The position numbers and the translations under genes were made by a program. The notes below the pieces were generated by a model. The model had not been told where the DNA came from. It searched no databases and was given only the letters and a program-made list of their open reading frames with translations. 64,000 nucleotides of DNA from Octopus sinensis (lineage: Eukaryota). This document shows positions 6,401 through 27,400 of this stretch, piece by piece. Position 1 is the first letter of the stretch, and each line of letters starts with the position of its first letter. The stretch is taken from positions 161,882,001 to 161,946,000 of the forward strand of contig NC_042997.1 in NCBI RefSeq assembly GCF_006345805.1. Reading direction: 5' to 3'.

Positions 6401-9400
6401 ATTCCTTACCTCCACGAGTTATGGTTTCCGATATTATTTCTGTGAATTTAATAAAATAACTTATCAACTTTTCATTGTATTAATGTTAATGTATCAATTA
6501 AACATACTTGAAAGCCTCTTACAAATATAATGAGGAGAAGAGAAAATAAAATAACTAGCTTAGAAATTATAGAATAATATTTACAATGAATGTTTCTGAA
6601 ATGATGTTACGAAATATTGGATGTCCCAATTAAATGTTTCCAAAACGTATAGTATCAAAAAAGTACCATTGTTTTAATAAGATAATATAAAGATTTTTTT
6701 CTAAATGACACATAAGAATTTGTAGAAAATTGTAAGCTCAAGCACAACTCCAATATTTATGCTACCTTCTCCTACGCAAAACTTAATATCGTGTGTAATT
6801 ATTGACACTAAAACCAAATAAACTCACCAATTTGTTCAGCATGGGGTCGATCTAAATGGAAAATATAAGAATTTTCTTTAAGTTCAAAACTTAATATTTT
6901 AGACTGAAGAACTTAATATTCTATATAACTTCCTATATATGTTTTTAAATAATGCAAGCCGTAAATAAGTATGGATTACAAATTACAAATATAATCATAG
7001 CAAATGTATTCCCCAACTAGGCATTTCTTACAAAAGTGTAACAGAGCGCAATGATAATTTTAAAGGGCTTTTATAGTCAATGCGTTTAAAGATCAAAAGT
7101 TTCTTTTGAATCAAAATTATTTAATATTTATTTCAACATATATTTTCAGATGCTTACCTATCCAATATTCTGTTTCTGGTACAGATTCTGTTAAATTAAC
7201 AAATAATGTAAACAATGTAGAAATAAATATTAACATAATAAATAACTAAATTTAATTTCATGCTGAAAAGCTTTTATTTCCCACGCGTTTTAGAGTTTAT
7301 TCAATGACCATCCAGTTCTTCCCAAAAATTCTACTGTTTTCATTTCAAATATTACACCCTAAATGTTTCTACGACACATAAGCTAAAAAAATATGAAACT
7401 AAGACAGTAGTTTCAATAGTTTATCATCTCAAGGTGTATCGGTACCATGCATATTATACAAACAAATTAGGCCAGTATTTGTGGGATTTTAATAAAAAAA
7501 AAAGGAAGACTTTACTCGAGTATATACAGGTTCACAATAATAGGGATATAATTCATATCTCAAAAATGCTTCACGGCTACATGATTTTAACCAATTGAAC
7601 ATGTCCCTTAGTGGCTTACGATATGTGCATATTTGATCACAAACGGAAGTAGTGAGGGAGCATTATACCTGTGTTGAGAGGAATTTGGTGAAGTTTAGAT
7701 AATATATTTCTAGAAACATCGGTGCTTCCTTCAACATCTCTAAACAAACACTATTCAGGGACTTTTGAACGGGATAGGGTACTCGACCTAAAGAAAGTTC
7801 TAACATAGAAGACCATGCGCAGTTTATATTGATATGAGATCCCCATGTCGCGCACATATGGTTGTGATGCATGTTGGCGGTCAACACTTATCAGACGGGT
7901 AGTCATGATGGGTATACTGGGCTTCATATATGTGTACCTCTGTGTCACTTTGATGGCATACATTGCTCTCTCACTCAATAATAATAATGATAATAATAAT
8001 AATAATAAGAAGAAGAAGAAGAAGAAGAAGAAGAAGAAGAAGAAGAAGAAGAAGAAGAAGAAGAAGAAGAAGAAGAAGAAGAAGAAGAAGAAGAAGAAGA
8101 AGAAGAAGAAGAAGAAGAAGAAGAAGAAGAAGGAGGGGGATAAGTTACAAAGACACGAGGTCAAAAATAGAGAATATCGTCGCCCGAATCGACACTTGTG
8201 CATGAAGACAAGTATTACTTCTAACAGCGAAGCTCAACTGTTTTCTTCACTCGGTATGCTATGAAATTGGTACAAGTTACGCAATGTAGAAGAAGAAGAA
8301 GAAGAAGAAGAAGAAGAAGAAGAAGAAGAAGAGAAGAAGAAGAAGAAGAAGAAGAAGAAGAAGAAGAAGAAGAAGAAGAAGCTGATGCTGATACAATAAT
8401 ACTAGTTACTACTTAGAAAATATTAAAAAAATATTAAGCATTTTCCTAAGCAATTAGAACTCTGAAACCTGCATATACAACAAAGCAGTTGATTAGACGA
8501 TGCTGGTATAAAAACAAAACATCGTTATTTACAATCAAATAACCGGGTTGCATCGAACAAAAGTGTGCTATTAGACCATAACTATTAAAAACCTAGTTCA
8601 GTTAAAATTATCAATGTTTTTATATGTAATGATGGTGTGACATCGTCCACTATAACAATAATACCAATAAAATTATTACGTAAAAGACTATTTATAATCA
8701 GAAATTTTCGGATATGTATCAGCAATATAGCCATGTGATGCTTTGCACAAATATGACGAAATAGATTACTGAAAATTTAAAATACTTACAAATACTGAGA
8801 AAATATATACAGTATGCACTTATTCAAACATATTTATTACCTCATTTATGTTTTAAAATATAAAACTTTCTTTCTTTGATGCAATTCATTATGTTACTTC
8901 ATAGAAATCGCGATAAAACCCTGCTTACCTCTTGGATACTCGTCCTCTGTCACATCTGCGAAATCAAATAATATTGTAACTAAATCACATGTTTTACTAC
9001 ATGGCTAAGAACAACTGCTAATCTACGACTATAGAAAAGAATATATATACCATTTTTCCAATTCTCGTAAATAATATCTCAAAAGCGGCATACTATTTCG
9101 TGTGTAATTACAGAAAGTCTCATTTTTTATATTACCAATTACTTACAAATCATGAGCTAGCTGTAAAATCCATTAAATGCATACTATGACAACGACAGCG
9201 ACTGAGTAAAAAATTATAGAGCTAGTTATTATTTTATATTATGAAATAAGCACATCGTTTATGTTCGTTCTATTTTTGTTTTCTAATGCAATATCACGCA
9301 AGAACTAGTTCCAACATTGTATAAAACAAAGAAATATATAAACATGATGATTTTATTTTTTATAAACAAGAGATACAATACTTTTTATTCTGTCACTATT

Positions 9401-24400: not shown

Positions 24401-27400
24401 ATGTATTGAAACACTAAATGTATGAAGATAGGAGCTTAAAAATCCGCACTAGCTTACCTGTGCGAGTTGAAGTTTCTGTTTCAACCTCTGCAGAATTAAC
24501 GAAATATTTATATATTTTAAAAAACGGTATTGCAAAACATCTAACAGTCAGTACTAGTTAGCAAGAAGTAAGGTTTCTAACCTAACCCACCGAGAAAATA
24601 TATTCCTTGACAATTCTGTGTTTAAAACCTTTAACAATATTAATTGACGATAACTGTCGACAAGTTTTTAAAATATATTTAAAAGTAATTTGTATTACAC
24701 CACAATTATATTTGCTATTGCAACATACGAATTCTCTGTTTATTTGAAATCAAAATATATAATATATTGTATTTACAAGCAAATATATAACATTTGCGTG
24801 TAAATACATATATAGATGTATATTCATACATCTATATATATATATATCAGAGAATGGCTACATAGATATCTTTCAGAGTGATTAAATTACATCAAAACGT
24901 CCAAATTGTAATACCTTTAAGCGTTAAGAGCAGAGAAACGACGTTAATTATACACTAACCTTTCAACAAATGAAAATATATAAGAAATTTTTAACGACAA
25001 AAACGCAAAAAGAAACAGAAAACAAACGATAAAAATAGCAAGTAATAGCGGTTTAAAAAGCAGAAACACGAGGATATACTTATATTTAATATTTATTAAA
25101 TTACAGTTAATACCTATATATGTAATACTATGAACACTAAATTTGCACCCATTGAAATGCAGTCGTCCTGTATGTAATTTATACATAATTCTCTTGCAAT
25201 ACAGCATATTTTATTTATATTAGAAGAATAAACTTAAGTAGAGAAAGCGATATTTTGTTGTTAAAGTATATATTCTGATATGGTGTGCTGATTTCTATAC
25301 TATATGTTCTTAAAAGGGTAAATCATGGACGCGGGTAGTAGCGAAATATTTGAAGCAAAAACGAATAACTTAACAAACTCACCAACAGTGGTTCCTATAT
25401 TAAATGTTTCGTCTAAAGAGAAAATACAAATATTGATAGAATGTTATATTTTAAAATATCACGTATGCGTGTTTATATATATACATACAGACGTATACAG
25501 ATGCATATATATATATATATATATGTATGTATATATATATATGTATATACATATGCATATATATGTACATATACATGTATATACATAAATATGTAAGTGT
25601 GTGTTTATGTGTGTGAGTATAATGCAACTGTAATTTACAGGACACAAATAAAGCTCCACTTTAAAATGTTCGGCTATTGAACTCACAGCTCTAAAATAAG
25701 CCAGCTCACATACATACACACACACATACACAGACACACACACACACTCACGCATCTCCGTTTTTTTTCTCTTCTTTTTCCATCTGTTTTCTCTCCTCGT
25801 TCCTATCTGTAGAAATGCGTAGGCTGGAAACGTCAAAAATTACCCAAGATTTGTTGGATGAGAATGGCATTAAAAACCTTCCATGGCCAAGCTAGTTACC
25901 AGATATGAACTCTACTGAACACCTCTGGGACATAATGGGCAGGACATTTCATAAAAAGAACAAGAAAGCATCTTCAAAGTCAGATCTTTTGAAATTGCTG
26001 CATGAAACTTGGCAAGAAATTCCGCAAGAAATATTCGTCATGTGATCAGTAACATGCCTAATAATGTTTTCTTGCATTGAAAAATGCAAAGAGCATATCT
26101 ACTAAATATTAAATATTCAAATTATAACAACAATTAATAAATAATTTGAATGTATAATTCCAGTGCATATTTATGTGCTTACACCGGTATATACAAGTAT
26201 ATATATACTTATATATATACTTATATATATATATATATGTATGTGTGTGTTTGTGTGTGTGTGTGTGTGTGTGTGTGGGTATGTATATGTATACATACAA
26301 ATATGCACATAAATATATGCAAGTATATATATACATATGTCTATGTATATGCATTCATATATACATATATATACAAACATGCGTAATGTGTGTGTATGTG
26401 CATGGTGTGTTGTATGCATGTACACAACTGACCGTTAAATCCACAATTTTTTTCTTCACTCTTTATTTTCTGTTGTTACTTTCTGTTGAAGACGTAGGCT
26501 CAAAACGTAAATTACTTTCTCACTTTCCCGAGCGTCAAACTAATACACCTGCTTGTTGTTCATACACTTGTCTTCGCCTTTGTTTTCTGTAAATTTCATT
26601 TTTAAAAAAATCCTGTATGTGTATCCTTATCGGTCTTATCTATCTAACGTTGCTTTTTGCGTATAGTCATATGACCGCATGTATGTAAATATATGTGCGT
26701 ATATACAGTATATGTCAGTAAATTTTTTGTTGATAATTCTCATAGTCATAAAGATCTTTGTTTAGTTTCATTCATGCATACTACCTAATTATGTATTCGC
26801 GGCACGGGCCTGGTATATACATGCACACATATATGCATATCTACATACATACACACATACATTCATTTATATACATACACACAAATAAATACATGCATAC
26901 ATAAATGTATGAATGTGTGTGTGCGCGCTCGTAAAATGTTGCGGCGCCATAAGCTGTTTGTAAGTCCAACGGAAAGTATTCAGTGAATCACCTCATGAAA
27001 GAATTTTATTGTATGTCTACTTATAGAAGCAGAATAATCATGCAATGTAAGCAAAAATAAAAAATGTAAATTTCACTCGTAATCAAAAAGTTTACTTTTT
27101 ATATCAATATAAATCTCTCTTTACAATTTATGCTTAAATAGTGATACAAATACTTTATGCACACACTCATATACGAACGCAGAAAGTGCATTCTTAAAAC
27201 TTGTCCCATTTAAACACCAATCGAACAGTCTAATCTGCTGGTCAGGGATTATGGACACATGTATTTTCATAATCACACCATATATATAAAATCAGGTCTA
27301 GAAAAAGGTATGCATACTGCTGCTAAAATATTCACTGCATTTGAGGTCACAACAGTAATGTATATCAGCTAAATTTTTATTTGTAAATGCACTTTGGCTG

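Follow-up and report, generated by a model that had tools for sequence, protein, structure and literature searches.

The sequence analysed here, referred to below as the window, is a stretch of 64,000 nucleotides (nt) of the Octopus sinensis genome (RefSeq assembly GCF_006345805.1, contig NC_042997.1, positions 161,882,001 to 161,946,000); all coordinates are those of the window. Its minus strand carries six exons that each encode one complete I-set immunoglobulin (Ig) domain, followed by a series of predicted microexons of 27 or 30 nt. The youngest microexons form a tandem array of 16 kb in which a cassette of four exons recurs together with its introns; the Ig exons lie 10-27 kb upstream of this array, and older, diverged microexons are found around it. 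The array, its units and its left flank are as follows.

8620..24644, minus strand: young tandem array, four full units and one 1.4-kb partial unit (repeat search, self-BLAST and alignment)
8684..12377, minus strand: unit U1, 3694 bp, with an expanded (AAT)n tract
12378..16466, minus strand: unit U2, 4089 bp, with an extra interspersed element of ~570 bp
16467..19872, minus strand: unit U3, 3406 bp (self-BLAST, alignment)
19873..23233, minus strand: unit U4, 3361 bp (self-BLAST, alignment)
23234..24644, minus strand: partial unit U5, with exons C, B and A2 only
7569..8697, no strand assigned: diverged older copy (~71%) of the unit spacer forming the left flank of the array, holding a copy of the interspersed element and (AAG)n tracts

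A repeat search of the window yielded a family (D8) of five 300-nt copies whose starts lie 3692, 4089, 3402 and 3361 bp apart. In self-BLAST all units were co-linear and 91-96% identical over 2.5-4.2 kb, and the borders of U1 to U5 were set by a five-way alignment. The units lie head-to-tail, non-coding sequence included, with no novel junction sequence between them. An initial annotation of this DNA had proposed that a whole four-microexon cassette was duplicated in tandem, with these same periods and with a rightmost unit devoid of exon A1. The periods were reproduced exactly, the rightmost unit lacks A1 and ends at 24644, and duplication of the cassette with its introns was seen directly in the repeat search, self-BLAST and unit alignment. 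The span then proposed, 7586-24645, takes in on its left the older spacer copy at 7569-8697, which lies outside U1. Homology to the array begins near 8620 (BLAST matches start at 8684) and stops abruptly at 24644/24645; the right flank (24645-28100) showed no similarity to the unit when aligned against it. U5 may have lost its A1 and spacer by deletion, or may end at the original breakpoint. Open reading frames (ORFs) of at least 70 amino acids (aa) within the array were all low-complexity or microsatellite read-through, and no other coding feature was found there.

Each full unit carries four microexons totalling 117 nt, and 19 exon copies are present on the minus strand, A1 four times and A2, B and C five times each. 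The four exon types are:

Exon A1, 30 nt, minus strand: AGGTTGAAACAGAAACTTCAATTCGCGCAG
Exon A2, 30 nt, minus strand: AGGTTGAAACAGAAACTTCAACTCGCACAG
Exon B, 30 nt, minus strand: AAAAACAATCCCAGGTGGAATTTTCAGTTG
Exon C, 27 nt, minus strand: ATGTGACAGAGGAAGAGTATCCAAGAG

The individual copies, in order of transcription, are:

24458..24487, minus strand: A2 of U5, (E)VETETSTRT
24142..24171, minus strand: B of U5, (E)KQSQVEFSV
23473..23499, minus strand: C of U5, 27 nt, (D)VTEEEYPR
21533..21562, minus strand: A1 of U4, (E)VETETSIRA
21131..21160, minus strand: A2 of U4, one synonymous change
20810..20839, minus strand: B of U4
20112..20138, minus strand: C of U4, one synonymous change and P>Q
18136..18165, minus strand: A1 of U3
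17734..17763, minus strand: A2 of U3
17413..17442, minus strand: B of U3
16710..16736, minus strand: C of U3
14027..14056, minus strand: A1 of U2
13640..13669, minus strand: A2 of U2, one synonymous change
13320..13349, minus strand: B of U2
12621..12647, minus strand: C of U2
10356..10385, minus strand: A1 of U1
9954..9983, minus strand: A2 of U1
9633..9662, minus strand: B of U1
8929..8955, minus strand: C of U1, E>D

Relative to the majority sequence, the changes are ACT>ACG in the A2 exon at 21160 and CGC>CGT in that at 13669, both synonymous; a synonymous GAA>GAG together with CCA>CAA (P>Q) in the C exon at 20138; and GAA>GAC (E>D) in the C exon at 8955. All 19 copies retain the AG acceptor and a GTAAGC or GTGAGT donor, and none contains an indel. 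A recount of exon copies and coding nucleotides thus gave the figures of the initial annotation, as did the tally of five substitutions (three synonymous, E>D and P>Q), no indels and intact splice dinucleotides. The sole frame open in all four exon types is that at offset 2 (phase 1), the other two being closed by TGA, one in A and the other in C. The first nucleotide of every exon is A and the last is G, so that joining any two preserves the frame and creates a GAx codon, for Glu or Asp, at the junction. The peptide of one unit is 39 aa long and consists of 28% E, 18% T, 13% V and 10% S, with a net charge of -8. The residues P, E, V and K together account for 46% of the unit and 44% of a 274-aa conceptual peptide, which exceeds the 40% operational PEVK threshold of PMC12063666, while P, E, V and T make up 62% of the unit.

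Exons and introns of the array were compared in the five-way alignment. Non-majority cells amounted to 5/555 in exons (0.9%) and 450/13980 in introns (3.2%; p = 7e-4), and variable columns to 4/117 and 368/3170, respectively (Fisher p = 0.004). Under permutation, four random intron windows of the same sizes were equally conserved in 0.9% of draws (P = 0.009). When approximately 30 nt of intron on each side was added to each exon, the contrast became 14/357 against 358/2930 variable columns (p = 3e-7), the exons with their flanks being roughly threefold less variable; variability returned to background 31-100 nt from the exon. The conserved island is accordingly the exon plus flanks of about 30 nt, the pattern expected for spliced microexons recognised via nearby intron signals. 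The greater variability of the introns, in substitutions and in indels, had been noted from the outset, and equal divergence of exons and introns, the outcome named beforehand as contrary to the proposal, was not what the comparison returned: the exons are slower.

The alignment also carries information on how the array was formed, beginning with a duplication inside the unit itself.

9734..10545, minus strand: internal tandem duplication of ~402 bp (U1 coordinates), the 'a' copy with A2 and the 'b' copy with A1; present in U1-U4

Divergence between the a and b copies is 14-15%, compared with 0.8-7% between copies of the same type in different units; the A1/A2 pair therefore predates the array. 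Homology in U5 ends exactly where the 'a' copy ends. The array consists of five [C-B-A2] segments and four [A1 + spacer] segments, which is the product expected from unequal exchange between two pre-existing [C-B-A2] segments. Pairwise differences between units in the shared C-B-A2 part range from 3.6 to 6.9%. By comparison, a tract of ~2.5 kb that runs from the A2 region of U3 (about alignment column 1250) through the U3 spacer into the first ~240 bp of U4 differs by only ~1% from its U4-U5 equivalent, and the remainder of the units sharing this tract differs by 4-5%. This mosaic, with its spread of ages (1-7%), fits repeated unequal exchange or conversion between misaligned units and not a single burst. 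The 'accordion' history suggested in the initial annotation is in keeping with these several events of different age. Unequal crossing-over is the probable mechanism, in preference to other routes of duplication.

An interspersed element of ~570 bp, together with (AAT)n, occurs in every spacer and in the older left flank. The two copies in U2 are:

14906..15474, no strand assigned: U2-specific copy, ~570 bp, 94% identical to 36841-37409 (self-BLAST)
15456..16031, no strand assigned: resident copy of the same family in U2, followed by (AAT)n (repeat search, self-BLAST)

Resident copies in the other spacers lie at 11533-12104, 18968-19578 and 22332-22938. The periods are unequal because U2 holds the extra element, giving its period of 4089 bp, and because the (AAT)n tract of U1 has expanded to 427 bp (11125-11551). 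A tRNA or Rfam signature was sought in the element and none was found, leaving it unclassified. The resident element may have helped units to misalign. It also holds a 114-nt segment bounded by AG and GTGAG and open in phase 1 (22771-22884, 19407-19520 and 15894-16007, minus strand), a possible candidate for exonisation that would be frame-compatible with the microexons.

Outside the array, both strands were scanned for the pattern AG, 3n nt open in phase 1, and GTRAG. Nine candidates were obtained, each exactly 30 nt long, all on the minus strand and all within the 12.4 kb flanking the array. The same scan gave zero candidates on the plus strand of those 12.4 kb and zero on either strand of the remaining 36 kb. 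The candidate peptides fall into the A, B and C types of the array:

28011..28040, minus strand: A-like candidate, IVTETEIHT
25383..25412, minus strand: B-like candidate, ETFNIGTTV
7158..7187, minus strand: A-like candidate, SVPETEYWI
6410..6439, minus strand: A-like candidate, IISETITRG
5537..5566, minus strand: B-like candidate, KRSKVEAAH
4036..4065, minus strand: B-like candidate, KPSEIESTV
1371..1400, minus strand: older A-like microexon, IVTEKVTRT; exon and close flanks align to the unit at 80-82%
1020..1049, minus strand: older B-like microexon, TRSEVESTV; exon region aligns to the unit at 72%
379..408, minus strand: C-like candidate, IVTQEERPR, 30 nt

The last three form an old cassette (379-1400) in which only the exons and their close flanks align to the young unit (84 bp at 80%, 68 bp at 82% and 71 bp at 72%), the match being lost in the rest of the introns. 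The spacer copy in the left flank is accompanied by A-like, A-like and B-like exons at 7187, 6439 and 5566; the array is therefore bordered by an older unit with the same layout. Between two of the old A-like microexons lies a further 24-nt candidate bounded by AG and GTGAGT (6828-6851, minus strand; RPHAEQI), which fits in phase but not in A, B or C type.

The Ig exons share the strand and phase of the microexons, and each encodes a single complete domain:

51320..51592, minus strand: I-set Ig exon, 273 nt, phase 1-1
48351..48617, minus strand: I-set Ig exon, 267 nt, phase 1-1, with boundaries deduced from the flanks
45661..45927, minus strand: I-set Ig exon, 267 nt, phase 1-1
39954..40223, minus strand: I-set Ig exon, 270 nt, phase 1-1, GTATGT donor
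38586..38855, minus strand: I-set Ig exon, 270 nt, phase 1-1
34226..34492, minus strand: I-set Ig exon, 267 nt, phase 1-1, the last ahead of the microexons; among solved structures its best relatives are Ig domains of the titin I-band

Four of the six were scanned against Pfam and matched I-set (E = 1e-13 to 1e-18). Among solved structures, Ig tandems of the titin I-band come closest (5jdd at 4.6e-40, then 3b43 and 7ahs), with MyBP-C also ranking high. Among database entries the best relative, at 48% identity, is an unnamed Ig protein from cuttlefish. The next-best match is a transcript-like Logan contig, SRR18067552_64014, which at 2037-5582 contains a PEVK-rich ORF of 1181 aa, K/E/P/V-rich and without a Pfam match, followed by SH3, Ig and Fn3 domains, the ORFs being split by frame breaks. 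This order of domains corresponds to a Sallimus-like layout of I-band titin. Strand and phase suggest that Ig exons and microexons belong to one transcript. Within the window the gene is represented by these two classes of exon; it continues past the low-coordinate end, with no Ig-gene exon found beyond 51.6 kb. The neighbouring Ig exons at 38586-38855 and 34226-34492, offset by 4360 bp, share 79% identity as protein and 81% as DNA. They represent a recent duplication of an Ig exon within the same gene; the Ig part of the locus is therefore expanding locally as well.

The reading favoured here, and considered likely, is that the window forms part of a giant titin/Sallimus-like muscle gene with a PEVK-like microexon spring, the youngest part of which would have been amplified by unequal homologous exchange. 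In such a gene a run of one-exon I-set Ig domains would be followed by a long region composed solely of symmetric microexons (27-30 nt, phase 1-1) of types A, B and C. A single microexon would contribute 9-10 residues to a chain that is acidic, rich in E/T/V/S and probably disordered, and that would serve as a PEVK-like entropic spring or linker. Any pair of exons would join in frame, so that length could change by exon skipping or by gain and loss of cassettes without harm to the protein. The A1-A2-B-C cassette (39 aa), along with its introns, resident transposon copy and microsatellites, would have reached 4.4 copies through successive unequal homologous exchanges between misaligned units, accompanied by some gene conversion. 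As judged from sequence, the microexons are probably spliced into messenger RNA, and it is a well-founded prediction that the peptide serves a titin-like protein as an elastic spring or linker. The initial annotation had spoken of a linker, which fits the context, six I-set Ig exons in phase 1-1 preceding the microexons on the strand they share. The identity of the gene, the older diverged A/B/C microexons to either side of the array, the greater age of the 402-bp A1/A2 duplication and the transposon and microsatellite behind the unequal periods go beyond that annotation.

Several points weigh against this reading. The ~30-nt intron flanks are conserved along with the exons, which argues for splicing and not for coding as such. 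Among the old paralogous exons an excess of change at third codon positions is absent for the A type and weak for the B type; with no clear excess, protein-level purifying selection is not claimed. Constraint appears to act on length, frame, splice signals and composition, as expected of a disordered linker, and not on exact residues. The unit peptide has one Pro and one Lys per 39 aa and no PPAK-type motifs of 26-28 residues, and is therefore PEVK-like in a loose sense only. Kinase, Fn3 and Z-repeat sequences are absent from the window, so that the label 'titin' rests on Ig similarity and architecture. A search of 5.8 billion proteins, including a cuttlefish annotation, returned no match to the 274-aa conceptual peptide at E<=1e-3, although this says little about expression because the Ig exons of the window likewise have no near-identical entry (best 48%, cuttlefish). 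In the 59 kb of the cuttlefish locus encoding the best Ig match, Ig exons and a few acidic short candidates were present and A/B/C-type microexons were not; an orthologous spring region, if one exists, would lie outside the 59 kb compared. Finally, the array is not a whole number of units.

The cassette may have been read correctly and its host misjudged, the gene being another Ig-rich giant of obscurin/UNC-89-like, MyBP-C-like or stretchin-like type with a disordered linker. I-set Ig domains are common to all of these families, MyBP-C and obscurin are among the solved relatives, and the best database match is an unnamed cuttlefish protein. The top solved relatives are nevertheless Ig tandems of the titin I-band, one Ig per phase 1-1 exon followed by an acidic region of short exons is the layout of that band, and the next-best match falls in the Sallimus-like transcript; a different host is thus unlikely, though deserving of serious consideration. 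Somewhat less probable still is that the microexons are real and the five copies functionally redundant, mostly skipped or alternative, the array being no tuned adjustment of spring length but the neutral outcome of an intron region rich in repeats and prone to recombination. In vertebrates, alternative splicing affects many PEVK exons and close species differ in their block duplications (PMC6469411), the exon design is compatible with any pattern of skipping, five exon substitutions of which two are non-synonymous are too few to reveal protein-level selection, and the old paralogues give no codon-position signal. Set against this, the exons with their splice flanks are kept in 19 of 19 copies, about threefold better than intron, and much older copies retain length, frame and splice sites.

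Two further explanations concern the reality of the array and of its exons. Assembly is difficult for tandem repeats of 3-4 kb at 93-99% identity, and the U3/U4 tract differs by ~1%, so copy number might have been inflated by mis-joined haplotypes or by a repeat collapsed and then expanded, with fewer units in reality. This is very improbable, as the five units can be told apart (3.6-6.9% pairwise in the shared part) and bear private indels, a transposon copy found only in U2 and a microsatellite expansion found only in U1, whereas far greater similarity and co-linearity would be expected of duplicated haplotypes. The least credible proposal is that the 27-30-nt blocks are conserved cores of a non-coding repeat whose splice-like edges and open frame arose by chance. 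Open frames of nine codons are indeed common in any sequence, no protein homologue of the conceptual peptide was found and conservation reaches into the flanks. Yet all 19 young and nine old copies are exactly 27 or 30 nt long, directly preceded by AG and followed by a GTRAG donor; they occupy a single strand and a single open frame, which is the phase of the neighbouring Ig exons; nine candidates contrast with zero in the strand and region controls; and the peptide motifs recur in old copies whose introns no longer align.

The titin/Sallimus-like reading can be carried further, tentatively and with rather low expectation. Cephalopod I-band titin would have a spring built from 30-nt microexons, in quanta of 10 residues, tuned by splicing and by rapid gain and loss of 39-aa cassettes, and would represent a new E/T/V/S-rich class of spring that is beta-prone rather than of polyproline II (PPII) type. 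If so, the array would be a recent, possibly polymorphic and lineage-specific lengthening linked to muscle specialisation. The length of titin-type springs sets passive stiffness as well as the lengths of I-band and sarcomere in vertebrates and flies (PMC12063666, PMC6469411). Changes of length in steps of 39 residues would provide a handle linking genotype to the mechanics of cephalopod muscle, which differs greatly between arms, tentacles and mantle, at a locus whose units can still be told apart and differ in age. These exons are probably overlooked by gene predictors, and annotated cephalopod titins may consequently be short of much of their spring.

Other features of the window were recorded. 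An intron between Ig exons contains an open segment (49584-49858, plus strand) whose translation resembles, by eye, the N-terminal helix-turn-helix of a mariner-type transposase. A direct duplication of 426 bp at 95% identity (30835-31260 and 32816-33241, offset 1981 bp) falls within the intron that separates the microexon region from the last Ig exon. At 1752-2437 there are 2.1 copies of a 333-bp unit, 98% identical; the unit begins with (AT)n and contains a block that appears tRNA-like by eye, for which ARAGORN and Rfam report nothing. An inverted pair with the same short ORF (2593-2679, plus strand; 2915-3001, minus strand) is probably a small transposable element with inverted ends, and 2818-3082 has a dispersed copy at 40926-41198 (88%). 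The region 58000-60000 has a GC skew of -0.24 and an AT skew of -0.19, with a 29-nt tandem repeat at 58254-58334.

In mammalian titin (TTN) the PEVK region consists of over 100 short, repetitive exons, which standard predictors overlook. Its PEVK-C exon blocks are described as segmentally duplicated and as triplicated, according to the account of Bang et al. 2001 given in Muenzen et al. 2019 (PMC6469411). Large PEVK-C duplications occur in several species, with a LINE-1-associated triplication in humans (PMC6469411). The octopus array is alike in that a multi-exon block of short in-frame spring exons is repeated head-to-tail with its introns, and in that interspersed repeats lie at or within the duplicated blocks; in PEVK-C, block copy number varies between related species and the exons escape standard gene prediction. 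PEVK exons encode approximately 28 aa, in contrast to the 27-30 nt (9-10 aa) of the octopus exons. The octopus peptide further differs in being E/T/V/S-rich, with its single Pro and Lys per unit and no PPAK, the host is a cephalopod, the units of 3.3-4.1 kb are 1-7% diverged, and the associated element is an unclassified ~570-bp repeat and not LINE-1.

In Drosophila Sallimus the PEVK exons are alternatively spliced, and deletion or addition of PEVK shortens or lengthens I-band titin and the sarcomere (PMC12063666). Both systems would place an acidic disordered spring, predicted in the octopus case, next to tandem Ig domains in an invertebrate I-band titin. Most of the Sallimus PEVK lies in few very large exons, such as exon 32 of ~1700 aa (PMC12063666), whereas the octopus spring would be assembled from dozens of 30-nt exons. 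A likeness may also exist to TTN-1 of Caenorhabditis elegans, an invertebrate I-band titin in which Flaherty et al. 2002 reportedly described PEVT tandem repeats with a period of ~39 residues; the P/E/V/T-type composition (62% in the octopus unit) and the period are similar, which is a mere lead and maybe a coincidence. The PEVT repeats of TTN-1 lie within large exons and are not known to be encoded in microexon cassettes. Symmetric microexons are shared with the schistosome micro-exon genes (MEGs), small secreted-protein genes with long runs of symmetric microexons of up to ~36 nt that vary by exon skipping. Unlike those of MEGs, the octopus microexons come after six Ig exons of muscle type that share their phase, with neither a signal-peptide exon nor the context of a small gene in evidence. 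The locus thus works like known PEVK expansions and is a clear but not unprecedented example of them. Its distinctive features are the grain of 9-10 residues per exon, the 39-aa cassette with a fixed order of A, B and C, the Glu/Asp junction rule and a proline-poor, E/T/V/S-rich chemistry.

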